IMG/VR virus record: IMGVR_UViG_3300035670_000008
Location: 62,001 to 126,000 of that record
Direction: 5' to 3' (one strand)
Length of the DNA: 64,000 nt
Of this stretch, positions 3,775-56,099 are shown piece by piece. Made by a program: the position numbers and the translations under genes. Under the pieces are notes generated by a model that was not told the DNA's origin, made no database searches, and saw only the letters and a list, made by a program, of their open reading frames with translations. Position 1 is the first letter of the stretch, and the number at the start of each line of letters is the position of its first letter.

Positions 3775-3780
3775 AGTTGG

Positions 3781-14306: not shown

Positions 14307-14417
14307 TCGGTAAAGCTCCTATTTGGTAGATACTAACAAGTTAGCTTATCCTGCCTTTTGCTTTTTTCCCCGTATTCTAGCTTACAGTGATAATAGTACT
14401 TTATTCTGCGCGTCCCA

Positions 14418-32717: not shown

Positions 32718-33214
32718 CTGGAAGCCTCCTTATTTATTGATTAGTTCTTCTTTCTCTCTGCTTTTTTCCCCGTATTATCGGAGCTACGCCCATCAAGTCT
32801 CGGAGCTACTGCCTGGTCGCATCTACGTTGGCGTTGTATGCAGTGGGGCTAGCCGACTTATCCTCCAGTAGACTTCCGCTTCGCTTCAATCTACTGCCTA
32901 AGCTTCGTCAGTCGGCTCCTCCGCTTCGCTCCGGCACCTCCTTCCTCCAATAAGTTGTACACCCGACTGCCAACGAGGCGGCGCCTCATTAACAGTCTGA
33001 ACACCTAGGGCGGAGCCCGTGTAAAGCAACCACCTATGTTCAGTAGACTTCCGCTTCGCTTCAGCCTACTAAACCCTACTTTTCAGCAGTCGGTACCTCC
33101 GGTACCAACTCCTACTTAAGAAAGGTTAATATTATTCATACATTTATTATGATAATACTATTACTCCGGTCCCTATATATTAGGTTTTGATGGGAGACTG
33201 AGGTTTAAGTTCCG

Positions 33215-34175: not shown

Positions 34176-34931
34176 CTACACGCGGGGACGACCAGCAGCT
34201 AGCGGCTCCACAGAGGGAGCTGCAACGGCGCGGCTACGGTCAAGACCGGTGTCACCAGAAGCGATGATGTCCACGGCGTCGGCGATACGCTCTACGATGC
34301 CACCAGTGGTGGTACCGATGAGGTGCATGCCAACCCATCCAATCTCCTGAATGCCGATGGTTTCCTCACCCGTTTTGGGGTTTGTCCGCACCGTGTAGAA
34401 GAATTGGAATTTTGAGCTGGTATCCTTGGCGGTCAAGTACAACCGCTTTTTGGAATTCGGTTTTGCGCCAGGTGAGGCTACGGCAGTGTCGTACTGCTGC
34501 GTACCCATACTTTTCCAAAGCGCTTCGTAGCGAATTAACGCTTCGAGCTCCTCTGGAGTAATGTAACCAGCGCGAACCAATGCCAAGTCAAAGCGTAGCT
34601 CCGGCGAGTAGTGCCCTTTCAACCACGACTGTCCGGGTGCTAAGTCAACTCGTCCGGTTTGCATGGGGACAAGTTGAAACTTGTCGTCCATAATGCCCCG
34701 GACTTTTAACTTAGCTGCGACATACTCTTCTCCCGTCGAGATATCCTTGCGGATGGACGGGGCAGTAAGTTCCACGGACACTGACCGGTTGAGGAACAGT
34801 TCACCTCCGATTTGGTGTTTCTGCCAGCCCGTGCGGGCTTGGTCTACAAAGATCTCGGGTACCTGACGGTACACGGAATCACTGCAGGAACGGAGGAACA
34901 GGGTGGTTTGGGGGGCGGTAGGTTGGTTCAT
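34176..34931 (-). CDS. Hypothetical protein
   Basis: AGGAGG RBS; class II motif at 34971-34986. Confidence 0.8.
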   Translation of the reverse strand: MNQPTAPQTTLFLRSCSDSVYRQVPEIFVDQARTGWQKHQIGGELFLNRSVSVELTAPSIRKDISTGEEYVAAKLKVRGIMDDKFQLVPMQTGRVDLAPGQSWLKGHYSPELRFDLALVRAGYITPEELEALIRYEALWKSMGTQQYDTAVASPGAKPNSKKRLYLTAKDTSSKFQFFYTVRTNPKTGEETIGIQEIGWVGMHLIGTTTGGIVERIADAVDIIASGDTGLDRSRAVAAPSVEPLAAGRPRV

Positions 34932-35250
34932 GGTGTAATAAGCCTCCTAGGGCTAAATTTATTCACTCCTTCCGCTCTTTTCCCCGTTTTATTGGGGCTA
35001 ACCAGCCTACACTCGATAGCACCTCAGGAACTCCTCGGGCTGTACCTGGAGCCAGATGTGGAAATGGCTGTGTCTAACATAAATGGCACCTCCGGCTTTA
35101 TACCAGTTGACGCGGCGACCGGAGGCTCTGTCCGTAGCAGTCTGCAAAGGGAGTTCTAACATGGAAACCTCTATAAGTACGTGTAGCAAAAAACCCCCAG
35201 AACCTAGATTTGAACCTAGATTCCGGGGGCGTTAGTCAAGTAGGAAACTT

Positions 35251-38072: not shown

Positions 38073-38438
38073 TTACAGAACGATGGCGCCTTGGCGGTGC
38101 TGAGCCCGCGCTACATCGTTTCTGAACGCCTGCAGGTCATCCGCAGGTAATGGGGCAAAGGACCCGTCTTCTTGGCGGAGTAAGTCCACCTCGAAGGGGA
38201 ACTGCCCCGTTAGACCGTGCAGAATTACCAGGATTCTGGATGCCAAGGGCGCCAGTCCAGGTAGCACGACCTCCACGGAGTCTCCGCTGGAGACACCTAA
38301 ACCCACTACAAAGGTGATGAGTTTAGTTTTGAGCTCGGGGTCTGCCAAGTTGACATGCAGGGCGCCTGGGAAGACGAATCCTTCGGCATTTAGGTGCGGG
38401 TTATCATGCCCGCTCAAGTTGAGTTTTAAGTGAGCCAT
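38073..38438 (-). CDS. csx15: Csx15-like protein (type III CRISPR cA4 ring nuclease/binder family)
   Basis: LNLSGH, VLPGLAP...L..LHGLTGQFP, LQAFR...AR; AGGAGG RBS. Confidence 0.7.
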   Translation of the reverse strand: MAHLKLNLSGHDNPHLNAEGFVFPGALHVNLADPELKTKLITFVVGLGVSSGDSVEVVLPGLAPLASRILVILHGLTGQFPFEVDLLRQEDGSFAPLPADDLQAFRNDVARAQHRQGAIVL

Positions 38439-38581
38439 TGGCTCGTTCCTCCTATTTATTAATTCTTCCTTCCTTCTGCTCTTTTCCCCGTGTTATCTGG
38501 CTTATTAGCTTTTTTGTAGCCAACCTACCATACTCCGGGGGCTGTCCGCAAGTAGTAAAAAAGGGGCATAGCCCCAGTGGA

Positions 38582-40869: not shown

Positions 40870-41065
40870 GAGATGGTCCTCTAGTAGAAAAATGAACTAC
40901 CCACTCTGCTCTTTTTGAACGCCTTTACTCCCCACCCACACCTTTTTGTTAGGCGAAAGGGTAGGACTAACTGCCAACCCTTTCAGGTTGGCTCTTACGC
41001 CGCGATTGGGTGGAGGTGGGTGTATCTAGAGAAGTTCAACTAGATACAGAGGTGGGGGAGATAGC

Positions 41066-44000
41066 CTATTTGCGGTTGGCTTTCAGCCACGCGAAGTAGT
41101 CGTGGTCTACGAAGCCTTGGCACCCGGTCAGCCAGTTAATTACCCGAGGGTCAGAGCAATCTAAGAAGACGTCCTCGATGCGCTCGAAACGAGACAGCAT
41201 CACATAGAGGGCGGCTACTCGCTGTAACGCCTGCTCTTCGCCTAAGCGGTCTTCGCTAATCGAAATGATGCCAGGGCCTTTAATGGTTAACCCTTGGCAG
41301 CTATTAATCGTAGTCGCGAAATCTGCGTGGAGGGGTAGCTGGATGAACTTACCGCTCAGCGTGCCATCGGAAAAGTGCTTGCCCTCGAACTCATGGCTTT
41401 CAATACGAACGAGCCGATGTCCGAAGTCAACGATGACGTGGTCGTTGCCTAGTGACTTAATCTTGCCCCGACTACCATTAGCGGCCAGCAAGGTCTTGTT
41501 ACCACTTACAAGCTCGTATTTATTGTTACGTAGCTTGACAGGCATGTCAATGGCCAACGTCAAATTGGCAGGGATGGGTCGGAAGTCCCGGAGCCAATTA
41601 TCGTTGGTAGCGCCTTTCCGAATGACTAGACCGTTGTAGGTCTTCTTGGTGGTGACCATCGCCTGGGTATAACGCTCGTTCACTTCAATAACGCGACGGT
41701 TATTGTAGAAGATATGAACAGCGTTCTCAGGCGGGGTGACTACGCCGTTGATGCAGTCAGCAAAACGCTGTGCAATAACCCCAGTAATCATCCCAGTCTC
41801 ACGTAGGATGTCCAGGGCTTCCTGGTAAGCAGGGTCACCTTTCTGACGCACGCCGGTGTTTAGCTCAACGATGCTGAACGGACGGGTGGTTCCGTTGAAA
41901 CCATTGATTAGGCTGCCTTGGTTAGCTTTACAGCCGTTGATGAAGACATCTTGGTAGAACTTCACGGCTTTGTTATCGCTAACCGGCAGCTGACCACCGT
42001 CACCTACGAGCAGGATTTGGGCGAGTGGGTTCAGGCGTTTGATAATGTTGAAGACAACAAACAACACCCGTCCATCCACCATGGATACCTCGTCGATAAC
42101 TACGCGCAAGCGCTGACCGGTCTTGCAGGTCAAGCTTTGCTTAACGTAGTTATTCGTCAGAGACTTCATCACCATCGACTGAGCCCACTGCCAATCGGTG
42201 GTGCCAGGGGTGCGCTTCTCGCTGAAGTCAATACCCAAACCGAAACCACTGTTAAGCGTTCCTAGCGCACCGTAAGCGCCTTCCTGTAGGCTACCGCCGA
42301 GGTTCATCACGGAGATACCCGTAGAACCAAAGACGACGACCTTGTCACCAGCGGCTGCCCAACGGTGGATGGTTTCGGCAGTGATGAAGGTCTTGCCGGT
42401 ACCAGCCTTACCGGTCAAGAAGATGTTGTCACCCTGCTCCACCAGGGCTAAGAACTTTTTTTGACAGCTGGTTAGGTTGTCGATTTCGGCTAGCTCGATA
42501 GGTAAACCGCAGGTGGGTTCAGCGGCAGGAGCTTCGGAGATAGTAGGGATAGAAGGGAGAGTTTGCATAGTAGCCTCAGGGTTAGGAGTTTCTATGCTAT
42601 CTGCTTTTTTCCCTGCTTTCTCTTTACTTTCTTGTAGGTCAGTAATAACCGTTGTGTCAGCTACGCGAGCAATGTTTGCTTTGGAGCCTTTGGAGTGCCC
42701 GTCCCAAATGACGATACTCTTATGGCAACCATCGTGCATGACAGCATCACGTTGCGTATAGCTACCATTTACGCAGATAGTAGGGTAGCCTACGTTATTA
42801 CGACAACGATTTGCGTAGTAAACGGTTACTTCGCAGCCACGTCCTAGCAGATACTGCTGTACAGCAAGGTCAATACCTGTAGCATCACCAACTCGGAATG
42901 TAGCACCGGCTTGGATGTAAGCATCGATCTCTACCTTTGCTTTATCAGGTAGTTCTTTGATCGAACGGCTGCCGGAGACAACTACAACCGCACGCTTTGG
43001 CTCAACTGCTCCATCTATTTCCATTAGTTCGCCAAATATCCAGCAGTCTTTCTCTTCAGACCAATCGTAGAAAAGCTTGGTTACTTCGCCAGTGCTAGCT
43101 AGATAAAGCCAAGAAGCTTCAAACAAATTTACGATGTGCTGGCTGGGGCGGTAGCTAGGTAGTGAGTAATTAACTGCATAGACTACATCCCGAATGGCGT
43201 TCAAGAAGTCGCAGGCCTGTACGTTGTACAACCAAGGATGTTCTATGAAGGCACCTTTAGCTCCATGCTCAATGACGAAGCAGTAAGTGTCAGGGAACAG
43301 GTCGAAGTCTCCAGACCACGGCTGGCTCTGTTTACCGTCATACCAATCCTTGGCTTCTTGTAGTGCCTCGTTGAAACTATCAACAGCCCCTGTATTGCTG
43401 ATATCTGGGTAGCCGTAAAAGTAATCTACTAACCCAGTTTCCCAAAGGTAGACTAGATAATCTTCCTTAGTTAGGCTACATTCGCGGCTGGAGTTGCCAT
43501 AGGAGAATACCAATGTGTTAGCGAAGATATTATCCAGCTCGTCCATTGAGATAATGCCGTTGTGTAGCAGGTCGCCCATGGTACGTTTACCTTCAACGAA
43601 ACTATTAATATACAGCTCGTCGATATAAGGTTTGATACTTTCAACAAAAGCATCAGCAACCTTAATCCGGTTGGCGGTGGGCTTAACCTCTGTAGCTACC
43701 ACATCAATGGTAGCCCCGGAGGGCTCTACAGAAGCAGGGGCCTCTGTAGATTCAGCGGTGGGTTCGGCGTCTACAACGGCAGCGAAGCCGCCATCAGACG
43801 GAGGAGTTGGCTCCTTGGGAGTAGCAGGTACAGACCCACTACCAGAGTCGTCAGAGCCTTCGTCTTCAGGCTTCTCGTCGTTAGATGCCGAACCGTTCGT
43901 CGGCTCAACTCCCAACTGTACAGCCAGAGCAGCTAGCACACGCTCGGCAGCAGCGTCGCCAAACTCAGCCCGCACTTCATCAACGATGGAGCGGACTTTC

Positions 44001-47000
44001 TGTTGGCGAGCGGTGCGTTCGGCTTTAGCGCGCTCTTCTGCTTTAACTTGCTCAGCGATGGCAACCAGCATAGCTACCGTGGCGTCACTCTCAGCGGCGG
44101 CTTCGAGGACATCGACGATAGGCACAGCAGTTACTTCTGCTTCCTCAGCGACCTGGGTAACCACAGGCGTAGGAGCCACGATGGGTGCAGGTGCAGGTGC
44201 AGGTGCAGGTGCAGGTGCAACGGGAGCTGGGGCGGTAGGAGCTGGGTCGATGACCTGCGTAGGGACAGGCGCGCTGCTAGGCTCGAACTTATCAGAAGAC
44301 AGCACTATATCAGGGTCTTCATAGTCGTCGAAGGCGGCTGAGCCTGCAAGGTCTAGCTCTTCTTCATCCCAGCGTCCATCATCCATGCCCTCGAATGGGT
44401 CTTCGTGAGTCAACCCATTGTCGATGACCAACTCGGCTGCTGGTTCATCGTTAGCGGTTGGGGCGGAGGCTTCCGCAGTATTCCAAGAGAGTGCATTGGC
44501 AATCTCCTGAGCAGTCTGGGTAGTCGGGCCGACCTCCATGATTGGTTTAATTTCCATTTCTCCTTCGACCTCTGGAGTAGAATGACGGAGCTCTAGTTTA
44601 TAGCGGAAGTAATCCATGGCGGGACGAGCTCCTGTGTCATCCATGAATTCATAACCGGTGCCAGGTAGGTATTTACATACGTCGCCCAGAACAGATTTCT
44701 GGAACATACGACGTAGTACCCATAGTACATGGGACTCGGTATAGACTTCCTCAGGGATTGTTACACCCGCAACTGGATTACCCAAGGCATACCAGTGGAA
44801 CAACTGACGAGTAACCTGTAGGTGACAGATTACTTTGTTTTCGTCCCAGTCGTTCTCGCCATTGAGGTAGCCTTTGAAGTAACCCACCCATTTGCCGCGG
44901 GTCATTTCAAACTGAGCGAAGGAATTATATTTGATAAATCCTTCTAACCCAACGCTGGCGTCAGCTTCGGTACCGTAGAGCATACCTTTCTCCCATGCTT
45001 TAACTTCGGCTAACAGGTTAAAGCACTCGGCAATCTCCATACCGGCAGTACCGTTACAGCCCATCGCTTCAACAGCCGCGATGAACTCTTCGATGCTCTT
45101 CACATCGTTGTAGCGGAACATCGTGACGTAGTTAGGGCGGGGTACTTTAACACCCAGACCTGTATCTACGAATTCAGGACGGCTGACGGCTTGGACGTAG
45201 TCTACCCACATACGCCAGGTCGGTTTGGTGTAGGCACCGAGAATGGTTTCATAAATCTCAGCTACGATAGCCACGATTTGAAACGCATTATCACTGGCGG
45301 CCCACTTGAGGGAGTCGGGAATCTCAACACCACACTTCTTGAGAGCAGTGACGATGTTGATTACACCTTCGCCGAGCTGATAGATACCGTAGGACACACC
45401 CACCATGGTGGTGAACACTTCGCGGGCGCGAATGTTGGTGTCCGCGTAGCTATCAACCTCAACCTCTTTACCTTTGATGGTGACCTTAATAGGATTGATA
45501 GCACCTTGTAAAGCACCATCTTTCGGGTCAACTTTCACGAAGGAGGAGAGGTTCTCGACGATGCGTAGGCGACTCCAGCCGTTCTTGGGCATCATGTAGT
45601 CACCCCAGTAGCATTCCTTGCGGATGAGGGTAGCCCAAGGAGATTCTCCAGGACGTTGACCCACAGCACCGGCACGGAAGGCAACAGCAGACTCAGCCGT
45701 GGTAACTAGACTGAGTAGCATTTGCAGGGTGTGCCCACATGTCCAGGGCAGGATAACGCCGTAGGTGCCGTCGCCGTCATTATCCCCAGCGGTCATCAAG
45801 TTGTGAGCCAAGGGGCTCATCAACCGGGTAGCGCCGTAGATAACGTCGAGCTGTACGACGGGCTGATTGTTCTCATCCAGCAGAGGCTTACGGTCTTTGT
45901 AGACAATGTAAGTCGGGTCGCTGGGCGCGTAGTAGAACGATTCGATAGCCTTACGGGTGTAGGGCAGAATCGTCACCAAACCAATCGAGCCGTCGGGCAT
46001 AGGCGAACGAGTCTCATGGTTGATGATGGGGGTCGGATACGCAGCTAACCCAAGACGAAGAGCAGTCTCGAACGTGGGGCAGTCCCGGTCAAGGCTATAC
46101 TTAGTCATTTCAGAGGTGAACTGACCAGTAGTAGCATCGAACACAGGGCGCTCGTAGCCACGCACGTACTGTTTCATCAAGTCGTACTGCATACCACCCT
46201 CTACTACTAAGAACATCCAGGTGGGGATGTTGGGTAGCGACAGTGCTTTACCACCAATCATCCGGTCACCACCGATATTCTTGGCGTTGCTGGAAGATTC
46301 GGTGAGGGCACGTAGTTTACCGCGCAGACGGTTGACATCGATGGCGCTCGGTAACTGACCAGCTAGGAGCGTAATCAGATACTGGTAGAAGAAGATGCCA
46401 GATGCTGTCTCTAGGCACTCCTCACCACTCTTCAACGAGTTGAGGTTGAAGAGCATAGGAGTGTAGATATCGATGTGGCGCACGATGTTGGAATCATCGT
46501 ACTCGTCTTCCCACTCATCGTAGTCACAGTCGTAGCTATCGTAGTCCCACTCATAATCCTCGTAGTCGGGAGCCTTCGTTTTGATATGGTCGAAGGTTAA
46601 CTTACGAGGAGTAGAGGTTACAACACGAATCACTACGTTCCGTAGGGCGTGGCAGACCTTACCAAACAGGGCGTCGTCGTCTGGATTGCTGAGGTCTACA
46701 TCAACTAGCAACTCACGGACGCGAGCCATACCTTCTTCATTAGGCACAGCTTCCCAAGATTTAACACCACGGCTAGTAACCTCTTGCCAGTTGGCGAGGG
46801 TGATGGTTTCTAGCAAGGTGGAGTCGTAGTCCATCGAGCCGTCGTACATGGCGCAGAGCAGCTTCGCACGGTAGGGAGATTCCAACGCGCGCACGGCTTG
46901 TCCTTCCATCACTTCACGGATAGCCTTGTTAGGCATCAAGCGATAGTTAGAACGAAGCGCAGCGCCTAGCTGATGAGAATCACCAGCGGCTTCTTCTACA

Positions 47001-50000
47001 GTGCTGCTTTCAAACAACACGACGTCGTAGATGGGGCAGTCGCAATCAGCACGACCAGCCAGCACCCAACCACGCTGCTGCATGACGGAGACGTTTCCGT
47101 CTCCGTTCAGGTGGAACCAGAAGATGTTGGCACGTTCTTCCGCGCGGCTACCTTTGTGGTTTGCAGGGTCGAGGAGGTCTACATCACTCAACACTACGGT
47201 ACGAGTGAAGACTTTGTCTCCCACGATGACCTTGCGGTCGACCACTGGGCCGATGTTGGCAGAGGTGACGTCATACATTAGCCCTTTGGGTTTGCCGTTG
47301 TCGTCCTTGGCATCCACAGCTGCTAGGTACAGTTCGAGTAGTTTGTTACCATACTCGCCGTACTCTAGGTCTGCCCAGGTCACAGTCAGCTGCTGCCCGA
47401 AGAACTCAGCAAACGCCTTCTGTAGCGCATCGTAAGCACCTGAGTTGATACCCACCGGGTCTTCAATGAGATAGTCTAAGTGGCGGCGGCCATCATACTT
47501 CTCATTTAGGTCCATACCCATCTCCCGCAGCGCCAAGAACCGGGGGTCTTGACAGTCTTTGTTGAAGACCAACGTATGGGAGATATAGGGGATATTACAG
47601 TGGGTCGTATCCATCTTCAGAACGTCCTGAGGTAACAACAGCTCAGCAACGCGCGGGCTGATGTTTGGATTATCGTTGTTGAAGATAGACTCGGCGTGCA
47701 TAGACGCGACCATACCTTTGACGACGGAGCTACGAAGCTTACCCCAGTCTTCGGCTTTGGTTACAGCCCACTCGACCACGAACTCAACTGCTTTCGTGCC
47801 AGTCTCTAGCGTGCGGGTGGTATAGGTACGCACCCACTCTAGGTAGCCAGTGAAGTCACGGGTCTGCTTGGCAGCACGAAGGTAGGGCTGATTATCCTTG
47901 AGCTTGGCACCGGTGTTGATTTGAGCCAACACATCGCCCTTGCGGACCAACTGCAGCTCGGTCGGGCGGTAGTAGGTATAGGTGATACCATACTCAACCT
48001 CTGTGGTCTTGGTGTGTTCACACCCCATGAGCACGGTGCCCATGTCAATTACCAGAGGATTTGCCCGATCGAACTTGCTGGAGCGGTAGGACATCTTCTT
48101 GGTAACGAAGCCCCGAGGACGGGAGTATTTGCTACCCAAATGCCACGCCTGACCTGCAATGCCTGTCATGGTCATACCGAGGATGACCTTCTGTAAGGTA
48201 CCTTCCAAGGGTAGGACTTGACCGACTGCCATTGAGCCACCTTTAACCTGATAGAAATCAGGCGGCATGGTACTCATAGCGATGGTGTTAGGCTCGTTGC
48301 CGTAGCCACCCTCTTTGATGAGTCGCTCCAACTCGGGCCGACCCTCGAAGTCAATCACGCAGCCGGAGGGCACAGAGGTAGGAGCTCGTAGGTCAAGACG
48401 CTTCGAGCCCTTCGCCGTCTTGGTGTTCAAGTTGGCGAACATCCAAGCGAGGTCACCACCAAAGCCGTTAGCCTCAGCAACAGCGCGAAGTTCTTCATAC
48501 CACGTGGGCGCCAGGTTTTTCAGGCGACCAAGGTCAACGTGGCAGATGTTGCCGCTACGCGCGGTGCCTTTGTTGAAGGAGAACCCCATGCTGAGCTCAC
48601 CGGTAATCCGGGTGATGAGCATCTGCATGATTTCGGAATCCTTCACCTGACCACGCAGACGGAAGGAGTGATACTCCTTGGTCAGACGGCCAGCGCCAGC
48701 ACCAGCGAAGTCTTTGAATTTGACCTTGCCGTTCTCTACTACCAAGGGCTCAGGATAGTAGACCACCATGTTGTTGTCTTTATCCCGATTCACCATCACA
48801 CCCACGATGCTATAGCTATTAGCTTCAGCATGTAGGGTGGGGCCAGACATGTTCATCGTCCCATCGCTAGTGACAGGGAAGAACTTGTCAGTTTTGGTGT
48901 GGAATGCAGCCAAGTTCGCAGACACGTTCCGTGTGGTAGCAGAGGCAACCAACTGACCGCTGAGTAGGGCGACGTAGCCGTAGTAGAACAGCCGCATGAA
49001 GCCACCGAAGGAATCACAACCCCGGATGGAGTGGATAAGCTTCTGGGACTTCTTGGTCTCAGGGTCACGGTAGTTTTCCCAAACTACTTCGATGACGCCC
49101 TTGAACATACGGTCACGGCGGCCATCAACAACACCCAGTTCAGTCATGCGAAAGTCGAGGCTCTCCTCTAGAACAATCGCATTGTTCTCCCACTTGATGA
49201 ACTGATCAGCGTAGTCCTCACCGATGTAGCTACGAATGATTCGGACCAGTGCCTCAAAATGCACGGGCTTCCATTCGTAACCGGATAAGGAACCAAGGTT
49301 GCCAGCCGGGTCTTTGCCCATACAGGCAGCCAAATACGCATGACACGCGTAGGCCGCAGGACGTAGCCCGTGATTCAACAACGTAGTACCATCTTGCAGG
49401 ACGGTGTTGTTGTTAATCCAGGTGTGGAAGTTGTCCTTGGTATAGGCCTTCCAATCTACGGCTACCAACTCGTCAGTCGTGATTTTCTGAATCGAGTTAT
49501 AGTAGGCGCGCAGTTCAGCCACGCGATCAAGGATGGCTTCTTTGGGGGTGCGGGCGTCAATTGTTACCTCAGGCTCGGTAGCCACAGGTGGGATGACTTC
49601 GATAGGCGCAGGCGCGGGAGCGGCAGGGGGTGGTGTGGTTTCCTGTTCCATAGGCACGGGTTTGCCGGGTAACAAACCACCATGCTCCTCGAAGTACTTG
49701 CAGGTGCGAGTACGTTCAAGGTCGCTCATATCCAGGCGAGGGTCGCCATGGTCCATACGCGGGCTGAATGCGTTGACCGGATACATACCTGTGTAAGGCT
49801 TCTTGTACCGGAGGATGCGCTCACCGTAGACGGTCTCAACCACGGCTTCCAGAGCGGTGGTATCAAAATGGTTGATACCCTTCTGGTCAAACACCCAATC
49901 AGCGGCCTGTAGCAGCGTGATGTTGTTGCAATACATCCGCTGAGAGGTGTGCTGTTGGTCAACACCAGGGGTAAGGTCACCGACCACAGTGTTGTCCTTA

Positions 50001-53000
50001 GCTACAGTCATGCGGCGGAGTTTGCCGCCGAAGACATAGCCAGAGTCCCCTTTGTCCCGGTATTCCCCAAAGCCATGAATAGCGTGAACCTCAGCGATAG
50101 CCACGAACCAGTAGCGTTTGCCTGCCTCTGGCATAGAGGCGATAATACCTTTGGAGTTGATGGTGTTGTAGTCACCAACTGCTTTGGCTCCATTGGTACC
50201 ATTTAGCAACAACTCCTTGAGCGTGCCACGTTGCAAAGTCGCTTCGGTGGAGGCAGCACTATCCACAAAGGAGGTACAACGTACCTTACCTTCCTCTTTG
50301 TTCAGCTGGGCATACACCAACTGAACTTGAACGTTGCGGATGTGCTGGTTACGATACCAGCCGCTGGTACCATAGAAGCCGCCAGCGCAGGTGGGAGCAC
50401 CTTTCTGGTAGCTACGAGCCGCAAAGAACAAGACGGGCTCGACCTCACCCATCATATTACCGAGGGAGCCGAAGTTCAGCTTAGCTTCTTCAGGTGCTAA
50501 GTCTGGGGCTCCCAATTTCAAGAAGGAGTTCTCGTTAGTAAACTGTTCCCGCACAGGCAGGTTCAGATTACTTTCTATTATTTCCCCGTCTGCGTTACGT
50601 CGCATACCAACGAGGTAGACAGCGTAACCCAGGGTGTACTCGTTCATACCGGCGGCAGCATTAGCCAGCTCGGCCACAAACTCGCAACCGGGGAAGCATT
50701 CGATTAAAGAGTTGAGCATATTCCCTCCTTTACTATGCTCTCCGTTTGCTTTTTTCCCCGTATTCGTGGAACACGGTGGGGAAGCAGGTGTGGTACCTGC
50801 CGCAACACCCGATTGTTCGGGAACCCCATGGCTGAAGGCCACGTAGTCGGCCACTATACCAGATTTGGTCTTGCCGAGCGTAGCTTTAGCTTCAAGCAGA
50901 TACTGCTTAAAGCCGGCGTTGATAGCCCGGTCAGCCTCCAAATCCATGGCCCAACGAGCGAAGGACTCAACTACTACCTCTTCTTCTCGTTTTTCCTGTT
51001 TGTAGCTTGCAATCCAAGCTTTAGGAATATTACGGAAGTACTTGCGGGCGAAGCCATTCCCTTTAAGGCTGAGGTAGCCATGGAAGTGGAGGTAGTGACC
51101 AAACTCATGAAAGAGAGTCTTGGTCATCTCACGGGCGTTTCCTTCACCCCGCTTCACGATATAAATCGTGTTGGGCGCGGCAAACGAACCGTTGACCTCT
51201 TCGTGGCCGGTGTAGCGGCGGGCCATGGCGTAATCCATTTCATCGTCACGGTCAGCGACGATGATATTAACGCTAAAGCTGTCTTCTAACCAGTTACGCC
51301 ACTGGTAGAAGCGTTCCATACCAGCGGGGTTGTTATCAATCTTAGCTACGTCAATCTTATGGACAGCACAAATGCCAGGCTCTTTAGTTGTGGGGGCCTC
51401 GAACTCTTTAGCCATCTTGTAGATAACAGCTTCATCTACTTGACGAATCCGTTGCTTTTGACGTGCGCAGGCGAGTTCTGGTGTTCCTTGCAGCCAATGA
51501 ACCTCCCAATGACCTTTGCCTGCTTCGGTAATACGTCGGCGCCATTTAGAGTTAGAGTTACAGCCGTCGTAAACGATTTGCATTCCTAGCTTATTAGCGG
51601 CGGCAAACTGCTCTTGGATGTAAGTCCAAACTACTTCGATATCACCCTCTACTAAATCGGTGCCATAGATTTCTTTCTTGGCTGTGTCCCAATCGATGTA
51701 GTAGTAATCTTTGAAGTTTTCTTTAGCGTAGGTAGACTTACCTAACCCAGGCAACCCAACTAACATTATGTGGGTCTTAGGTTTAATACCTTGGCATAAA
51801 ACAATAGCTTCATCATGTGCAGCTACGTTAGCTAAATGCTCAGGCAGCGCCTTGCCTTTACCAATAGTACGCACATGCCGTGCCACATAATCATTAACCC
51901 GGCCAGCCTTAGGAGACACACGCACCGGAAAAGCTTTCATTTTGAAAGCCAACCCAGCATACATCTTGTCGCACTGCATCGTGTAGCGCATCCAATTGTA
52001 TGTTGTAAACTTATCCCGGTCGGTTTCATACTTGAAGGTATGGCTTAAGCAGAATGCCCGCACACCACCAGGGGTTTCATACACCTTAAACAAGTAGTCT
52101 GGGTTGTTCTTACACCAGTCGTGTAGTAAAGCATAGGCCTGACAGCGGTGGTTAATGGTAATACACTCCTCGGTATAGTGCCCATCGTCAGGGATATCCC
52201 AATCAAGCATCATTGTGTTTGATTCCCAGAAATAAATCTGCTTCTCTAGAGACAAGTCTTCAAGACGAAGAGCCATCTCTAGTTCACCAGCAGCACCGTA
52301 CTCGCTACGGGCGGCGGTGAGTACTTCTTGGGTAGAGCTGGCGATGTATGGGAGCTCGAATCCCGTGGCGCCCAACTGCCACGCAAACAGCTCGTCCATA
52401 ACCTCAGCCGCCTGTTCGTAGGCAGCCTGGGCCAGCATCAGCTGGTGATAATCCTCCTTCCACTCTTCGAGTGGGTCATACTTGGACTCATCAAAGTCCT
52501 CCTCGTATTCGTCGTCATACTCTTTTTCTTCCTCGTCGTCATACCCGTACAGGGTATCGTCGTAGAAGGCCAGCTTGGGCTCCTGGCGTTTGATGCCACC
52601 ATAGAGGTGGTTGAGGGCGCTGTGGCCATCAGCGCGCCGGTTGTATTTACCCTCCGCGATTAAGCGGCGGTAGTGAATAGACAAAGGCAGCTCTTCCTCA
52701 GTCCGCTGGGTGCGGAACTTGCCAGCTTTGGCTACGGGTGCCTCTGCCCCGGTAGCTAACTGGAACCGGGAGTTTCCTCGCCGGGTAGCGATTGACTTCA
52801 TCGCCCGCGTAACAGGCATAACGGGCAGCTGCCGGGATTTGGGTGGGGTCACCACTTTATAAGTGGTAATTTTGACTACCTGACCACCGCGATGCGCGTA
52901 GATGCGCAACCACTCGGAGTAGCCAAGCCGGTCGGCTTTCCAGACCGATTTAATTTTGCGCTGCTTACGTGCAGCAGCGCGTTGTTGGGTTGTCAGAGGA

Positions 53001-53785
53001 CAACGAAGTTTCCGAGAAGAATGTTTCTGCCGGCGCTTACGGGCAGCGCGGGCTAATTGTTGATTGATTTTGCGGGAATTTTGCATGACAATAGCACGAA
53101 CGGTTCGTGCGATAGGTGTAACGCTTGAGCCTTGGCGGAAGCGTTTTTGATAACCATTACGACGGGCACGCCGTAGCGCTGTGGTGTTTAACCCACGCCC
53201 GCCTGTGGAGGCGTTAAACGCCGCGCGGTTCATGATTTGACGAACCCGCTTGTGAGCGGCGCGGGCGGTGGCGACGTCACCAGTGCAATCGTCGGGAGTG
53301 AAGGCAGCAACAGTCAGGGTTGGGGCAGAGGCACGGACTTGCTTAGCAAGTTGTTCCGCCCATTCCCGACGGAGCTTAATATTGGCAACCGGTTGGATAC
53401 CAGCACCGGCAGGCAAAGTATTAAACTCTACCGGCAAGGCCAGTAGAAGTTGCATTACCAACAACCCATTCCAGCGGGTAATCCGAGCTGGTGGTAGGGC
53501 CAGCTGAGGGCGAACAGCTGCGTCAATAGCAGCATTGAAGTCAGTCAGGGCCTGCTGACGACGGGCTTCAGCATCAGCTGCCACCGGAGGTAGCAGCAGT
53601 TGAGCGGTAGCGGTGGTGGTGATAACAGCGGTTGGCTCATCCCATGGTCCGAAATCACACAACGGTATATCCCATGGGTCGGCGATATGAGTTTGCAATA
53701 CACCACCCATCAGAAAGGCAACATGGGCGGGGCTGACTGCAGCGGAAATAACATTAGCAGCAACGGAAAATTGTTTGAAAGACAT
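41066..53785 (-). CDS. 4239-aa multidomain protein: P-loop kinase, zincin, putative single-chain two-barrel RNA polymerase, SLOG domain, Pif1/RecD-like helicase
   Basis: GLPGLGKS; HEFGH; GKLRSSVVKG, RSP, AGDNDGD; SGSR..GDATGID..RD..WDG.SKG; GKAGTGKT, DEVSM, GDGGQLP, RQ, SCQGLT, YVMLSR. Confidence 0.8.
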   Translation of the reverse strand: MSFKQFSVAANVISAAVSPAHVAFLMGGVLQTHIADPWDIPLCDFGPWDEPTAVITTTATAQLLLPPVAADAEARRQQALTDFNAAIDAAVRPQLALPPARITRWNGLLVMQLLLALPVEFNTLPAGAGIQPVANIKLRREWAEQLAKQVRASAPTLTVAAFTPDDCTGDVATARAAHKRVRQIMNRAAFNASTGGRGLNTTALRRARRNGYQKRFRQGSSVTPIARTVRAIVMQNSRKINQQLARAARKRRQKHSSRKLRCPLTTQQRAAARKQRKIKSVWKADRLGYSEWLRIYAHRGGQVVKITTYKVVTPPKSRQLPVMPVTRAMKSIATRRGNSRFQLATGAEAPVAKAGKFRTQRTEEELPLSIHYRRLIAEGKYNRRADGHSALNHLYGGIKRQEPKLAFYDDTLYGYDDEEEKEYDDEYEEDFDESKYDPLEEWKEDYHQLMLAQAAYEQAAEVMDELFAWQLGATGFELPYIASSTQEVLTAARSEYGAAGELEMALRLEDLSLEKQIYFWESNTMMLDWDIPDDGHYTEECITINHRCQAYALLHDWCKNNPDYLFKVYETPGGVRAFCLSHTFKYETDRDKFTTYNWMRYTMQCDKMYAGLAFKMKAFPVRVSPKAGRVNDYVARHVRTIGKGKALPEHLANVAAHDEAIVLCQGIKPKTHIMLVGLPGLGKSTYAKENFKDYYYIDWDTAKKEIYGTDLVEGDIEVVWTYIQEQFAAANKLGMQIVYDGCNSNSKWRRRITEAGKGHWEVHWLQGTPELACARQKQRIRQVDEAVIYKMAKEFEAPTTKEPGICAVHKIDVAKIDNNPAGMERFYQWRNWLEDSFSVNIIVADRDDEMDYAMARRYTGHEEVNGSFAAPNTIYIVKRGEGNAREMTKTLFHEFGHYLHFHGYLSLKGNGFARKYFRNIPKAWIASYKQEKREEEVVVESFARWAMDLEADRAINAGFKQYLLEAKATLGKTKSGIVADYVAFSHGVPEQSGVAAGTTPASPPCSTNTGKKANGEHSKGGNMLNSLIECFPGCEFVAELANAAAGMNEYTLGYAVYLVGMRRNADGEIIESNLNLPVREQFTNENSFLKLGAPDLAPEEAKLNFGSLGNMMGEVEPVLFFAARSYQKGAPTCAGGFYGTSGWYRNQHIRNVQVQLVYAQLNKEEGKVRCTSFVDSAASTEATLQRGTLKELLLNGTNGAKAVGDYNTINSKGIIASMPEAGKRYWFVAIAEVHAIHGFGEYRDKGDSGYVFGGKLRRMTVAKDNTVVGDLTPGVDQQHTSQRMYCNNITLLQAADWVFDQKGINHFDTTALEAVVETVYGERILRYKKPYTGMYPVNAFSPRMDHGDPRLDMSDLERTRTCKYFEEHGGLLPGKPVPMEQETTPPPAAPAPAPIEVIPPVATEPEVTIDARTPKEAILDRVAELRAYYNSIQKITTDELVAVDWKAYTKDNFHTWINNNTVLQDGTTLLNHGLRPAAYACHAYLAACMGKDPAGNLGSLSGYEWKPVHFEALVRIIRSYIGEDYADQFIKWENNAIVLEESLDFRMTELGVVDGRRDRMFKGVIEVVWENYRDPETKKSQKLIHSIRGCDSFGGFMRLFYYGYVALLSGQLVASATTRNVSANLAAFHTKTDKFFPVTSDGTMNMSGPTLHAEANSYSIVGVMVNRDKDNNMVVYYPEPLVVENGKVKFKDFAGAGAGRLTKEYHSFRLRGQVKDSEIMQMLITRITGELSMGFSFNKGTARSGNICHVDLGRLKNLAPTWYEELRAVAEANGFGGDLAWMFANLNTKTAKGSKRLDLRAPTSVPSGCVIDFEGRPELERLIKEGGYGNEPNTIAMSTMPPDFYQVKGGSMAVGQVLPLEGTLQKVILGMTMTGIAGQAWHLGSKYSRPRGFVTKKMSYRSSKFDRANPLVIDMGTVLMGCEHTKTTEVEYGITYTYYRPTELQLVRKGDVLAQINTGAKLKDNQPYLRAAKQTRDFTGYLEWVRTYTTRTLETGTKAVEFVVEWAVTKAEDWGKLRSSVVKGMVASMHAESIFNNDNPNISPRVAELLLPQDVLKMDTTHCNIPYISHTLVFNKDCQDPRFLALREMGMDLNEKYDGRRHLDYLIEDPVGINSGAYDALQKAFAEFFGQQLTVTWADLEYGEYGNKLLELYLAAVDAKDDNGKPKGLMYDVTSANIGPVVDRKVIVGDKVFTRTVVLSDVDLLDPANHKGSRAEERANIFWFHLNGDGNVSVMQQRGWVLAGRADCDCPIYDVVLFESSTVEEAAGDSHQLGAALRSNYRLMPNKAIREVMEGQAVRALESPYRAKLLCAMYDGSMDYDSTLLETITLANWQEVTSRGVKSWEAVPNEEGMARVRELLVDVDLSNPDDDALFGKVCHALRNVVIRVVTSTPRKLTFDHIKTKAPDYEDYEWDYDSYDCDYDEWEDEYDDSNIVRHIDIYTPMLFNLNSLKSGEECLETASGIFFYQYLITLLAGQLPSAIDVNRLRGKLRALTESSSNAKNIGGDRMIGGKALSLPNIPTWMFLVVEGGMQYDLMKQYVRGYERPVFDATTGQFTSEMTKYSLDRDCPTFETALRLGLAAYPTPIINHETRSPMPDGSIGLVTILPYTRKAIESFYYAPSDPTYIVYKDRKPLLDENNQPVVQLDVIYGATRLMSPLAHNLMTAGDNDGDGTYGVILPWTCGHTLQMLLSLVTTAESAVAFRAGAVGQRPGESPWATLIRKECYWGDYMMPKNGWSRLRIVENLSSFVKVDPKDGALQGAINPIKVTIKGKEVEVDSYADTNIRAREVFTTMVGVSYGIYQLGEGVINIVTALKKCGVEIPDSLKWAASDNAFQIVAIVAEIYETILGAYTKPTWRMWVDYVQAVSRPEFVDTGLGVKVPRPNYVTMFRYNDVKSIEEFIAAVEAMGCNGTAGMEIAECFNLLAEVKAWEKGMLYGTEADASVGLEGFIKYNSFAQFEMTRGKWVGYFKGYLNGENDWDENKVICHLQVTRQLFHWYALGNPVAGVTIPEEVYTESHVLWVLRRMFQKSVLGDVCKYLPGTGYEFMDDTGARPAMDYFRYKLELRHSTPEVEGEMEIKPIMEVGPTTQTAQEIANALSWNTAEASAPTANDEPAAELVIDNGLTHEDPFEGMDDGRWDEEELDLAGSAAFDDYEDPDIVLSSDKFEPSSAPVPTQVIDPAPTAPAPVAPAPAPAPAPAPIVAPTPVVTQVAEEAEVTAVPIVDVLEAAAESDATVAMLVAIAEQVKAEERAKAERTARQQKVRSIVDEVRAEFGDAAAERVLAALAVQLGVEPTNGSASNDEKPEDEGSDDSGSGSVPATPKEPTPPSDGGFAAVVDAEPTAESTEAPASVEPSGATIDVVATEVKPTANRIKVADAFVESIKPYIDELYINSFVEGKRTMGDLLHNGIISMDELDNIFANTLVFSYGNSSRECSLTKEDYLVYLWETGLVDYFYGYPDISNTGAVDSFNEALQEAKDWYDGKQSQPWSGDFDLFPDTYCFVIEHGAKGAFIEHPWLYNVQACDFLNAIRDVVYAVNYSLPSYRPSQHIVNLFEASWLYLASTGEVTKLFYDWSEEKDCWIFGELMEIDGAVEPKRAVVVVSGSRSIKELPDKAKVEIDAYIQAGATFRVGDATGIDLAVQQYLLGRGCEVTVYYANRCRNNVGYPTICVNGSYTQRDAVMHDGCHKSIVIWDGHSKGSKANIARVADTTVITDLQESKEKAGKKADSIETPNPEATMQTLPSIPTISEAPAAEPTCGLPIELAEIDNLTSCQKKFLALVEQGDNIFLTGKAGTGKTFITAETIHRWAAAGDKVVVFGSTGISVMNLGGSLQEGAYGALGTLNSGFGLGIDFSEKRTPGTTDWQWAQSMVMKSLTNNYVKQSLTCKTGQRLRVVIDEVSMVDGRVLFVVFNIIKRLNPLAQILLVGDGGQLPVSDNKAVKFYQDVFINGCKANQGSLINGFNGTTRPFSIVELNTGVRQKGDPAYQEALDILRETGMITGVIAQRFADCINGVVTPPENAVHIFYNNRRVIEVNERYTQAMVTTKKTYNGLVIRKGATNDNWLRDFRPIPANLTLAIDMPVKLRNNKYELVSGNKTLLAANGSRGKIKSLGNDHVIVDFGHRLVRIESHEFEGKHFSDGTLSGKFIQLPLHADFATTINSCQGLTIKGPGIISISEDRLGEEQALQRVAALYVMLSRFERIEDVFLDCSDPRVINWLTGCQGFVDHDYFAWLKANRK
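50717..50764 (-). promoter_or_regulatory. Putative internal promoter motif + RBS + in-frame ATG inside giant ORF
   Basis: AATACGGGGAAAAAAGCA identical to motifs at 14360 and 32760; AAAGGAGGGAAT-ATG (Met1023). Confidence 0.7.
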
Positions 53786-54085
53786 AGGTTTAATCTCCTA
53801 CTTGACTGAGTTTGGTTTGGATTGAAACAACGTCCATGCTTTTAAGCGGAGCTAAGGACTGAACCGATTGGATTTATTTAATGTCTTGTCCAACTCAGAC
53901 CTGCCCAAGCAAAAACCAACGCGGCTGTGCGCCTTAGCAGACATCAGGTCGGCTTGCGCCGCGCCATTGGTATCTACGTATCGGTTGTCTTGGGTAATAA
54001 AAAAACCCCAGGTATAAAACCTGGGGCGGAGCTAACAGAACCAACTCTTGTTAGGAGTGGGTCTGCTAGCTCCAAAGAAGTGAAA

Positions 54086-55655: not shown

Positions 55656-56099
55656 TTAGAAGCCGAATTCAGCCTCAATATCGAACATAAAATCCTCTAC
55701 ATTGGATTCGATGACAGCTCCGAATTGGAGCGTGGCTGCTAGCTGGTTTAGTTTGTCTTCAGACCGAGCTTTGGCAACTCGTAATGCCTCAGCGGCAGCT
55801 TGAACAGCTGCTTTCTTTTCGATTAAAGACTCAGCTCGTAATACTTCTGCTTTTTGTAAAGCAGAGTATTCACGCGCTTGCTCATTAGTATTTGCGGTTT
55901 CTTTGGTTAGACGACCATGCAGGGCATCCAACTTTTCCTCCACTGTTAGGGTAGGAGCCGCCGCGGGAGCGGTGACTTCCTCTACCGGGGCTACCGGTAG
56001 ATTAGCAGAAGAAGAAGAAGAAGAAGAAGAAGAAGAAGAAGAAGAAGAAGAAGAAGAAGAAGAAGAAGAAACAACGTAGCCAAAGTTGAAAACTGTCAT
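55656..56099 (-). CDS. Coiled-coil protein, paralog B, with Ser21 tract
   Basis: Highly similar to 56560-56970. Confidence 0.85.
   Translation of the reverse strand: MTVFNFGYVVSSSSSSSSSSSSSSSSSSSSSANLPVAPVEEVTAPAAAPTLTVEEKLDALHGRLTKETANTNEQAREYSALQKAEVLRAESLIEKKAAVQAAAEALRVAKARSEDKLNQLAATLQFGAVIESNVEDFMFDIEAEFGF
56007..56069. repeat. (AGA)21 in-frame trinucleotide tract
   Basis: Encodes 21 Ser (TCT). Confidence 0.95.

Follow-up and report, generated by a model that had tools for sequence, protein, structure and literature searches.

Introduction

Some phages produce more than one protein from a single reading frame through internal translation starts that give co-terminal isoforms. The primase-helicase 4A/4B encoded by T7 gene 4, the A/A* proteins of phiX174 and the C/Nu3 proteins of lambda are examples. 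Further cases have been described for phage endolysin isoforms (PMC9430671, PMC12203907) and for the 'gene-in-gene' Fha (PMC13389060). In these systems, as in the locus studied here, a Shine-Dalgarno sequence (SD) and an in-frame ATG lie inside a longer ORF at a domain boundary, and the shorter product shares the C-terminus. As in T7 4A/4B, one of the products of our locus would be a helicase-containing form lacking an N-terminal module. In contrast to these examples, the scale is far larger (4239, 3217 and 500 aa), there are two nested starts, each is preceded by a copy of the phage's own gene-start (promoter-like) motif, and the gene is a polymerase. Our evidence is comparative only, and no proteins have been seen.

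Virion RNA polymerases have been described for the crAss-like phage phi14:2 (gp66; bioRxiv 10.1101/2020.03.07.982082) and for P23-45, with gp96 fused to the tape measure together with the separate non-virion gp64 (PMC10770324). Phage N4 carries such an enzyme as gp50. Like these, the protein studied here is a giant single polypeptide with a two-barrel active site (DxDxD) embedded among other domains, the phage has its own promoter-like motifs, and there is a possible need for both a delivered and an intracellular polymerase. However, its best structural matches are beta and beta' of cellular-type polymerases, in beta-then-beta' order, there is no sequence match to T7/N4-type polymerases, and it is fused to a Dda/Pif1 helicase rather than to a tape measure. 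Virion packaging was not examined. P23-45 uses two genes, where this phage may use one nested gene.

Polyvalent proteins of phages and conjugative elements (Iyer et al. 2017, as cited in PMC7824862) are likewise very large proteins in which lineage-variable enzymatic domains are strung on a conserved scaffold, and the proposed release of modules is also shared. Here the variable domains are a kinase, NADAR, amidoligase, RNase H, DUF4326 and a domain matching phrog_289. The scaffold is an RNA polymerase-helicase, the defining peptidase domain is not confirmed, and module separation is suggested to occur by nested initiation rather than, or as well as, by peptidase cleavage. Finally, the programmed -1 frameshift of dnaX (tau/gamma) also gives two products from one gene, by means of an A-run heptamer followed by an early out-of-frame stop at a domain boundary. 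In our gene the heptamer phase is not canonical, the motif also occurs outside coding sequence, and the products of a frameshift would share the N-terminus, not the C-terminus.

Results

The giant ORF and its internal start signals

We analysed a window of 64,000 nucleotides of an uncultivated jumbo phage (positions 62,001 to 126,000 of IMG/VR record IMGVR_UViG_3300035670_000008). An earlier note had pointed out that promoter, ribosome-binding site and ATG are embedded in frame at domain boundaries of a giant ORF, in linker-like sequence and without an interrupting stop codon. This observation is confirmed. The gene (W) is one uninterrupted ORF of 4239 codons, and the phage's own start motif (core ACGGGGAAAAAAGCA) lies inside it twice, each time 27-33 nt before an in-frame ATG (Table 1). 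We refer to the site at Met1023 as junction 1 (J1) and to that at Met3740 as junction 2 (J2). Both lie in poorly conserved, gap-rich stretches of the orthologue alignment. Reads showing stop codons at the junctions had been named in advance as evidence against the idea. Contigs from four DNA metagenome runs of one study, possibly the source samples, cover 47900-53850 with zero differences, a comparison that includes J1 but did not cover J2. The leader upstream of the giant ORF shows high nucleotide conservation with the relatives L001 and L002 (relatives are given L numbers and family proteins P numbers throughout).

Table 1. Features of the giant gene and of related motif copies (window coordinates, all on the minus strand).
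Position	Strand	Feature	Details
41066..53785	-	Giant ORF, 4239 aa	N-terminal extension, single-chain beta/beta'-like RNA polymerase, variable domains, Dda/Pif1-type helicase
53786..54004	-	Leader upstream of the giant ORF	SD TAGGAGA precedes the first ATG
54005..54027	-	Terminator-like hairpin plus T-run	Closes the upstream transcription unit
50720..53785	-	N-terminal extension, residues 1-1022	Conserved N1 domain (1-500, Arg/Lys-rich stretch at about 150-400), then swappable cassettes
51386..51772	-	P-loop polynucleotide-kinase-like domain, residues 672-800	Within the variable cassette
50735..50768	-	J1 copy of the class II start motif	CACGAATACGGGGAAAAAAGCAAACGGAGAGCAT; core ACGGGGAAAAAAGCA at 50761-50747
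50724..50731	-	J1 Shine-Dalgarno	AAAGGAGG, 4 nt before the ATG
50717..50719	-	ATG of Met1023	Start of the proposed 3217-aa isoform
47186..50719	-	Beta (Rpb2)-like polymerase module	Residues 1023-2200
44486..47188	-	Beta' (Rpb1)-like polymerase module	Residues 2200-3100
45770..45784	-	DNDGD metal-binding motif	Residues 2668-2672
42569..44485	-	Variable acidic/Pro-rich linker and accessory domains	Residues 3101-3739; best match phrog_289 ('GTP-binding domain') at about residues 3595-3727
42590..42623	-	J2 variant copy of the class II motif	Core GCAGGGAAAAAAGCAGAT; GCAGGGAAAAAAGCA at 42616-42602
42574..42577	-	J2 weak Shine-Dalgarno	GAGG, 5 nt before the ATG
42566..42568	-	ATG of Met3740	Start of the proposed 500-aa helicase product
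41069..42568	-	SF1B Dda/Pif1-type helicase, residues 3740-4239	Walker A GTGKT at 3795, DEVS at 3898
14359..14373	-	Intergenic class II motif	Upstream of ORF 13965..14306; shares 21 nt with the J1 copy
32759..32773	-	Intergenic class II motif	Upstream of ORF 32121..32717
34973..34987	-	Intergenic class II motif	Upstream of ORF 34176..34931
38477..38491	-	Intergenic class II motif	Upstream of ORF 38073..38438; preceded by a terminator at 38575-38563

The motif is more frequent than expected by chance. GGGAAAAAAGCA, allowing up to 1 mismatch, occurs 6 times in the window, all on the minus strand, against 0.42 expected. A 34-nt matrix built only from 7 intergenic copies gives 16 genome hits scoring at least 15, against 0.2 in shuffles. 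J1 scores 39.3, where the training sites score 42-47, and is the best non-training hit, while J2 scores 21.8 and is the 12th best hit. These two are the only hits deep inside an ORF, and 14 of the other 23 hits of at least 8 are followed within 80 nt by the start of an ORF of 50 aa or more. The orientation of the motif is fixed, and the copies lie 29-52 nt from start codons. One copy follows an intrinsic terminator and one lies in a divergent intergenic region.

Domain composition and family

The RNA polymerase region proposed in the earlier note is real, by fold and by its catalytic motif. It comprises a beta-like module and a beta'-like module with a GDxDGD motif, whose aspartates are invariant or nearly so in 25 family members, and the C-terminus is a Dda/Pif1-type helicase. 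No second polymerase was found in the genome. The polymerase-helicase fusion is present in 21 of the 27 other family proteins found, including members with only 21-25% core identity. The N1 domain is N-terminal in eight other members (P0001, P0002, P0004, P0006, P0007, P0008, P0020 and P0022). This giant polymerase-helicase family is apparently undescribed.

Conservation at junction 1

J1 is strongly supported. All 10 orthologues read at the DNA level (25-50% identity) keep an SD 4-8 nt before an in-frame ATG at the homologous boundary. The SD is AAGGAGG, CAGGAGG or AGGAGG, whereas P0008 has only GGAG, and in P0010 the ATG lies 6 codons upstream. The SD is encoded as KGG, KEV, KEE, SGG, KED, EGG, QEG or QGE and sits in different codon phases, so selection acts on the nucleotides, although related sequences are not fully independent observations. 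This is the only strong-SD plus in-frame ATG site shared by the orthologues, each 10-13 kb gene having 0-4 such sites in any frame. The N-part varies from 173 to 1530 aa, while the sequence from this Met onward is conserved. It had been proposed beforehand that relatives be inspected for stops at the junctions, and at J1 the frame is open in 10 of 10 orthologues.

Relatives carry their own genome's version of the motif at the same place. L001 and L002 have GGGCGTGAAAAAAGTAGAGGGA, and L005 has CGAATAAAGCAAAGGGCACG, which recurs at 4 intergenic sites. In contrast, P0004, P0007, P0008 and P0009 have the SD-ATG but no clear motif within 60 nt. Local mRNA folding around the J1 ATG is not consistently weak; it is weak in 3 of 10 orthologues and very strong in P0007.

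Conservation at junction 2

J2 is moderately supported. Its SD is weak or absent, P0004 and P0010 have no ATG there, and P0001 has only GTG. However, W, P0002 and P0005-P0008 keep an A6G core 31-36 nt before an in-frame ATG, and the L006, L007 and L008 sites match their local intergenic AGCAAAAAAGTAGAATAA motif. In L009 a stop does separate the modules, and the helicase is a separate 523-aa gene, 10 nt after the stop of the polymerase gene, which starts at a position equivalent to Met3740.

Taking both junctions together, AAAAAAG is rare in these genes, with 19 occurrences in 10 genes. Of these, 15 fall in the 3.9% of codons next to J1 or J2 (binomial P = 2e-18). Lys-Lys is encoded with AAA as the first codon in 18 of 23 cases at the junctions, against 14 of 98 elsewhere. 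Eight A6G sites are followed 27-36 nt later by an in-frame ATG.

Discussion

Overall, our data suggest that the giant gene is a conserved in-frame nested gene, which probably also makes shorter versions of its protein. We regard this reading as more likely than not, with a probability of about 0.65. In-frame nested starts as such are already known; the unusually large polymerase-helicase setting is apparently undescribed, and the motif copy before each start differs from the known cases. The sequence analysis itself demonstrates the long fusion protein with its four parts, the strong ribosome-binding site and in-frame ATG kept by selection on the nucleotides at the boundary between N-terminal extension and polymerase, and the purine-rich motif, otherwise marking the starts of this phage's genes, just upstream of that ATG and in a weaker copy before the helicase. 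From this we infer that ribosomes also start at Met1023 and make a 3217-aa polymerase-helicase that lacks the N-terminal extension. There is no RNA, ribosome-profiling or protein evidence for this; no RNA run was listed. We further infer that the motif gives the short form its own mRNA 5' end, through an internal promoter or, less likely, a processing site, whose effect would be to uncouple its amount and timing from the full-length form. The same arrangement, with a weak ribosome-binding site, would yield a ~500-aa free helicase from Met3740. It is speculation that the full-length form is the virion-delivered enzyme with its cargo domains and the short form the intracellular polymerase.

The interpretation given in the earlier note, namely three co-terminal products with possible positive feedback if the polymerase reads the motif, is partly supported. 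The polymerase, the helicase and a junction before the polymerase that behaves as a conserved internal gene start, implying the 3217-aa product, are supported, and the ~500-aa helicase product moderately so. That the motif is a promoter rather than a transcript-leader or processing element, and that this polymerase reads it, was not tested. Its alternative of a recent fusion of three genes is not supported.

It is possible that separate products arise mainly by proteolytic processing of one polyprotein, as proposed for injected polyvalent phage proteins (PMC7824862), with the internal start signals being minor or auxiliary. The architecture of variable enzymatic cassettes around a conserved core fits this view. 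Moreover, a repeated peptide A(K/R)xxYGAGDLQM flanks cassettes and lies 30-85 aa before the J1 Met in five orthologues, W having a variant at residues 493-506, and W and P0001 carry an HEFGH zincin-like motif 130 aa before J1. However, the HExxH region has no significant family match, the best being Peptidase_M3 at E = 0.068. Proteolysis does not explain the nucleotide-level conservation of the SD in different codon phases or the A-run codon bias at the junctions, but it is not mutually exclusive with nested initiation.

A somewhat more doubtful reading is that the class II motif is not a promoter but an RNA-level element, such as a leader, an RNase processing site or a translational enhancer, at the 5' side of ribosome-binding sites. 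The short isoforms would then be made from the full-length or a processed mRNA. The motif is purine-rich and lies at a fixed 27-52 nt before start codons. At 14373 a sigma70-like -35/-10 pair ends about 10 nt upstream of the motif, which would place the motif at the start of the transcript, and the bases just 5' of ACGGGG resemble a -10 hexamer (TAGAAT, GATAAT, GATAAC). The available data do not separate the two readings. On the other hand, the copy at 38491 follows an intrinsic terminator by about 65 nt, with no sigma70-like match between them, and motif versions differ between phage lineages along with the polymerase, as is expected of a phage-polymerase promoter.

It appears unlikely that the A-run is a dnaX-type -1 frameshift site, at which a fraction of ribosomes would slip, stop within a few codons to give the upstream module alone, and perhaps reinitiate at the nearby ATG. 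In P0005, P0006, P0007 and P0008 the J2 heptamer is in the canonical A_AAA_AAG phase, with a -1-frame TAA 2-3 codons later, and in W the -1 frame stops after 6 codons at J1 and 3 codons at J2. A-runs are avoided elsewhere in the genes, and the helicase gene start of L009 looks translationally coupled (TAAATG). However, in W and P0002 the phase is AAA_AAA_G at both junctions, which is not a canonical slippery heptamer. The -1 TAA in L006-L008 is part of the local intergenic motif AAAAAAGTAGAATAA, which also occurs outside coding sequence, no stimulatory hairpin is evident, and the identity of W J1 with the intergenic site at 14359 extends far beyond the A-run.

That the signals are non-functional relics or chance matches, and that only the 4239-aa protein is made, is very unlikely. 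SD-like sequences and ATG codons do occur inside genes by chance and no expression data exist, but the SD-ATG is retained in 10 of 10 orthologues with changed codons and phases, the motif scores far above shuffles, and A6G is strongly clustered at the junctions. Least likely is a recent fusion in this phage, to which the start-like signals at both junctions and the separate helicase gene of L009 might point, since the fusion is family-wide and the L009 split shows a 9-nt tandem duplication that creates the stop, which looks secondary.

Genomic setting

The window is part of a 216,563-bp virus record with a G+C content of 49% and a CheckV completeness of 96%. The finding is surrounded by phage genes, namely those for a DNA polymerase, an integrase, a tail fibre, an Ig-domain tail protein and PhoH. 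Using megablast and tblastn with the giant gene, we found no similar phage in the 50,697 deposited phage records, and a pattern scan of IMG/VR with the alignment of the protein core found no relative. The DNA occurs in subsurface and soil metagenomes.

Start signals inside the giant ORF

The earlier note had described promoter-like motifs, ribosome-binding sites and in-frame ATG codons at two domain boundaries of a single giant ORF, and we found that this observation holds. The ORF is 4239 codons long without a stop, and both Met1023 (junction 1, J1) and Met3740 (junction 2, J2) are in frame. The ribosome-binding site is strong at J1, where AAAGGAGG is separated from the ATG by 4 nt, but weak at J2, where only GAGG is present with a 5-nt spacer (see table). 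Stop codons at the junctions in sequencing reads had been named in advance as evidence that would count against nested starts, and a check for such stops in relatives had been suggested. Contigs from four DNA runs of one study, possibly the source samples, cover positions 47900-53850 without a difference, so that the open frame across J1 is not an assembly slip. J2 was not covered by this comparison. The frame across J1 is also open in all relatives read at the DNA level, as described below.

Positions of features in the window
Feature	Position	Strand	Residues	Sequence or remark
Giant ORF	41066..53785	-	1-4239	no stop codon
Untranslated leader of the giant gene	53786-54004	-		~220 nt
J1 start motif	50761-50747	-		ACGGGGAAAAAAGCA
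J1 Shine-Dalgarno (SD) sequence	50731-50724	-		AAAGGAGG
J1 ATG		-	1023	4 nt after the SD
J2 start motif	42616-42602	-		GCAGGGAAAAAAGCA
J2 SD	42577-42574	-		GAGG
J2 ATG		-	3740	5 nt after the SD
Variant of the repeated peptide	~52268-52309		493-506	SEYGAAGELEMALRLE
Degenerate second copy of the peptide	~50831-50890		~966-985	
P-loop polynucleotide-kinase-like domain			672-800	
HEFGH (HExxH, zincin-like) motif	51095-51109	-	893-897	
Beta-like module (predicted)			1023-2200	
Beta'-like module (predicted)			2200-3100	
DNDGD metal-binding motif			2668-2672	
Dda/Pif1-type helicase			3740-4239	
Protein following the giant gene	40171-40869	-		preceded by CAAAAAGAGCAGAGTGGG
Start motif, second sub-family	37132, 39468, 40073	-		GTNCAAAAGAGCGGA(A/T)GGAG(C/T)G
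Intrinsic terminator	38575-38563			upstream of the 38491 motif copy
Palindrome with core CGAACNGTTCG	43889, 53097 (both inside the giant ORF), 4066, 9233, 26629			9 copies in the genome
Palindrome CGTAGCTACG	e.g. 5598, 6196, 12445, 30808			12 copies in the genome
(AAG)n microsatellite	~56021-56080	+		inside ORF 55656..56099 (-)
Tyrosine-integrase-like gene and IS-type transposase	5251-6393 and 10895-12103	-		transposase: phrog_506, E = 1.7e-93

Within two mismatches the 15-mer of the start motif (class II) occurs nine times in the genome, always on the minus strand. Seven of these copies, each preceding an ORF start, were used as intergenic training sites. A 34-nt matrix built from these seven copies alone finds 25 hits of at least 8 bits, 24 of them on the minus strand, against 2.85 in shuffles, and 16 hits of at least 15 bits, against 0.2 in shuffles. 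J1 scores 39.3, where the training sites score 42-47, and J2 scores 21.8. These two are the only hits with a long open frame upstream, while 14 of the other 23 are followed within 80 nt by the start of an ORF of 50 aa or more. The copies lie 29-52 nt before start codons, and J1 shares 21 identical bases with the copy at 14359. A second sub-family of the motif lies upstream of further minus-strand ORFs and shares the AAAAGAGC core with class II.

One copy, at 38491, follows an intrinsic terminator and one lies between divergent genes, which is what a transcription-unit start signal would show. However, a sigma70-like -35/-10 pair ends just upstream of the copy at 14373, and the bases just 5' of ACGGGG look like a -10 hexamer. 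The motif may therefore be the promoter, part of it, or the first bases of the transcript; transcription starts were not mapped, as no RNA run was listed for this phage, which is known only from metagenomes. PHROG annotation of the genes downstream of the class II motifs gave no functions, so that no timing class was assigned to this regulon. A candidate second motif upstream of the giant gene, TTAGCTCCGC, proved not to be a repeated signal.

The leader of the giant gene, compared with L001:400-648 and L002:9755-10003 (L001 to L010 denote DNA of the relatives), is 71% identical at the nucleotide level among these three phages, whose proteins are only ~48% identical. It has long invariant blocks, four compensatory pairs in a predicted fold and a terminator-like GCCGAC...GTCGGTTTTTGC element. 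It may be a structured regulatory RNA or an attenuator controlling the full-length form, although Rfam found nothing above threshold in 40800-54200.

Identity of the giant protein

Residues 672-800 are a P-loop polynucleotide-kinase-like domain. The C-terminal part is a Dda/Pif1-type helicase of the SF1B group, with matches to AAA_30 (1.9e-12), PIF1 (1.8e-7) and phrog_325 'Dda-like helicase' (7.8e-38). Its Walker A (GTGKT) and DEVS motifs are invariant in the three sequences compared, W (the protein of the window) and the orthologues P0001 and P0002. In contrast, Pfam, PHROG and PDB sequence searches do not recognise residues 1023-3594, there is no Pfam hit on residues 1023-3739, and the ESM Atlas gave no lead for the N-terminal N1 domain.

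A profile search of 1.84 billion proteins found 29 proteins, 27 of them relatives other than the two orthologues already in the query. The aligned family sequences keep a G-D-x-D-G-D motif (W residues 2667-2672); in 25 sequences D469 is invariant and D471 and D473 are at least 90% conserved. An AlphaFold model of residues 2200-3100 (pLDDT 77.7) has only largest polymerase subunits (beta', Rpb1, vaccinia Rpo147) among its best 39 Foldseek matches. All 50 rows listed in a second alignment are also largest subunits, with Z of 7.0-7.9, which itself lies within the background range of the aligner. A model of residues 1023-2200 (pLDDT 74.1) matches second-largest subunits (A135, Rpb2, beta) at E = 2e-4 and probability 1.0, and Lys and Arg residues are invariant in the family alignment. 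Met1023 therefore opens a beta-like module, followed by a beta'-like module, variable domains and the helicase.

The assignment to the two-barrel (DPBB), cellular beta/beta' type rests on fold and motif only, since the Pfam profiles RNA_pol_Rpb1_2 and RNA_pol_Rpb2_6 have no matches in the genome, and RNA synthesis was not assayed. No other polymerase was found in the genome. For the T7/N4 single-subunit type, PF00940 had no match in the genome and there was no PDB sequence match; as the control search also returned nothing in its reference genomes, the absence of a PF00940 match does not settle the matter, but the fold matches point to the two-barrel type instead.

Junction 1 in the relatives

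Ten orthologues at 25-50% identity were read at the DNA level, namely W, P0001, P0002 and P0004-P0010; the family members P0013-P0030 were not read. In all ten the frame is open across the boundary and an in-frame ATG sits at the first residues of the conserved core. This ATG is preceded at 4-8 nt by AAGGAGG, CAGGAGG or AGGAGG, except that P0008 has only GGAG; in P0010 the ATG lies six codons upstream. The encoded residues differ (KGG, KEV, KEE, SGG, KED, EGG, QEG, QGE) and the SD occupies different codon phases, so the conserved object is the nucleotide string. Each gene has only 0-4 sites with a strong SD plus ATG in any frame, and this is the only one shared. The N-terminal part varies from 173 to 1530 residues, whereas the sequence from the Met onward is conserved. 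Reduced mRNA structure around the internal ATG was examined as a hallmark of true starts, but the result was inconsistent across the orthologues and is not used here. The data provide strong comparative evidence for a functional internal translation start, and because the frame also stays open in every lineage, both the long and the short form appear to be needed.

The motif at the junctions in the relatives

L001 and L002 carry GGGCGTG(G/A)AAAAAGTAGAGGGA 30 nt before the J1 ATG, a version of the GGGCYTGAAAATAGAAGAGAGA motif found directly upstream of several of their genes. L005 carries CGAATAAAGCAAAGGGCACG 33 nt before the J1 ATG and again at four intergenic sites. In L006, L007 and L008 the J2 site (AGTAAAAAAGCAGAATAA and its like) matches the local intergenic motif AGCAAAAAAGTAGAATAA that precedes neighbouring genes. 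Moreover, the heptamer AAAAAAG is rare in the ten genes, with 19 occurrences, of which 15 lie in the 3.9% of codons next to J1 or J2 (P = 2e-18). Lys-Lys is written with AAA as the first codon in 18 of 23 cases at the junctions, but in only 14 of 98 elsewhere. Eight A6G sites are followed 27-36 nt later by an in-frame ATG, these being both junctions in W and P0002 and J2 in P0005-P0008.

A 218-240-aa protein of unknown function, without a PHROG match, always follows the giant gene in W and in L001-L010. It is preceded by a version of the same A-rich start motif and is probably a functional partner.

Junction 2 and the history of the fusion

At J2 an A6G core plus ATG is kept in 6 of the 10 orthologues, whereas P0001 has GTG, P0004 and P0010 have no ATG in the linker, and in one the helicase is a separate gene. 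The SD is weak (GAGG in W, AAGGA in P0006) or absent (P0005, P0007). In P0005 and P0007 the ATG lies before a DUF4326 domain plus the helicase, so the product would be about 640 aa. In L009 (11340-11380) the helicase is a separate 523-aa gene that starts 10 nt after the stop of a 2785-aa polymerase gene, where a 9-nt tandem duplication (GAAATAAAT) creates the TAA and the next ATG. There is no SD, so translation is probably coupled (TAAATG). The start is equivalent to Met3740, lying 41 versus 34 residues before the CQxxF motif. A free helicase is therefore viable in this family, and we consider a helicase-only product in W somewhat more likely than not.

The helicase is at the C-terminus of 21 of the 27 other family proteins found, including members with 21-25% core identity, and the N1 domain is N-terminal in eight other members. 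The fusion is thus old.

Interpretation and alternative explanations

The interpretation given in the earlier note was partly supported: the 'RNAP region' is correct, while the alternative that three genes fused recently is rejected. What our analysis establishes is the anatomy of the gene, its conservation and the identities of the polymerase and the helicase. From these we infer initiation at Met1023, probably on an mRNA whose 5' end is created at the internal motif, and weaker initiation at Met3740; there is no protein evidence for the separate polypeptides. That the long form is the packaged enzyme and the short form the intracellular one, and that the polymerase reads its own internal motif, is speculative.

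Proteolytic processing is a plausible alternative that does not exclude internal initiation. The architecture resembles polyvalent proteins (PMC7824862), with lineage-variable enzymatic cassettes on one giant polypeptide: W has a kinase, P0001 and P0007 have NADAR, P0004 has a faint amidoligase hit, P0008 a weak RNase H hit, and P0005 (weak) and P0007 have DUF4326. A peptide A(K/R)xxYGAGDLQM(C/S)L recurs at the edges of the variable cassettes, twice in P0004 and P0006 and once in P0002, P0007 and P0010, and the copy nearest the junction lies 30-85 residues before the J1 Met. W has a variant and a degenerate second copy. The peptide may be a protease or docking site. The HEFGH motif of W lies in a domain shared with P0001, about 130 residues before Met1023, but the region has no significant family match (Peptidase_M3, E = 0.068), which leaves the presence of a dedicated processing peptidase undecided. 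Processing cannot explain the nucleotide-level signals. An RNA-level role for the motif is likewise not excluded by our data. A dnaX-like -1 frameshift was suggested by A_AAA_AAG with early -1 stops at J2 of P0005-P0008. We downgraded this idea, because the phase is AAA_AAA_G at both junctions of W and is also non-canonical in P0002, and because the early -1 stops in the P0006-P0008 lineage are part of a motif that also occurs in intergenic DNA.

In-frame internal starts are well known, for example T7 4A/4B. Others, including endolysin isoforms, have been described in the literature (PMC9430671, PMC12203907, PMC13389060). Giant virion polymerases are also known, for example crAss-like gp66 and P23-45 gp96, the latter paired with a separate non-virion gp64 (10.1101/2020.03.07.982082, PMC10770324). 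In the literature searched we found no description of a polymerase-helicase fusion family or of nested starts in a phage polymerase gene, which does not prove that none exists. Our data expose an apparently undescribed family of giant single-chain beta/beta'-like polymerase-helicase fusion proteins with swappable enzymatic cassettes in environmental phages.

Phages that bring their own polymerase usually need two enzymes, one delivered with the DNA and one made later, and known cases use separate genes. The present gene offers a concrete, testable case, with exact coordinates, in which isoforms of a single giant gene could do both jobs. A far-reaching and, in our view, unlikely reading is that one gene supplies the whole transcription programme of the phage. 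The full-length protein would be the virion-delivered polymerase carrying cargo enzymes, the Met1023 isoform, made from its own internal promoter, would be the intracellular (non-virion) polymerase, and the Met3740 product would be a free helicase. Virions were not examined, and the hints at packaging are only indirect, namely the giant size, a basic N-terminal region and a single polymerase gene in the genome. If the polymerase itself recognises the A-rich class II motif, which co-varies between phage lineages, the internal promoter would form a self-amplifying loop, a regulatory logic not described for any phage polymerase. Moreover, nucleotide-level comparison (SD phase shifts, A-run codon bias) can reveal nested genes that gene callers merge into one ORF.

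Other sequence features

A palindrome with core CGAACNGTTCG, up to 17 bp in its longest form (TGACGAACSGTTCGTCA), is repeated across the genome, and a related CGAAC(A/T)GTTCG palindrome lies 25-45 nt before the J1 ATG in P0006-P0009. Its function is unknown; it could be an operator, a methylation site or a nuclease site. A further palindrome, CGTAGCTACG, is found mostly inside coding sequence and is unexplained. The long (AAG)n microsatellite, and (CA)n runs elsewhere in the genome, may be contingency or slippage-prone tracts. The 216-kb phage genome also contains a tyrosine-integrase-like gene and an IS-type transposase.
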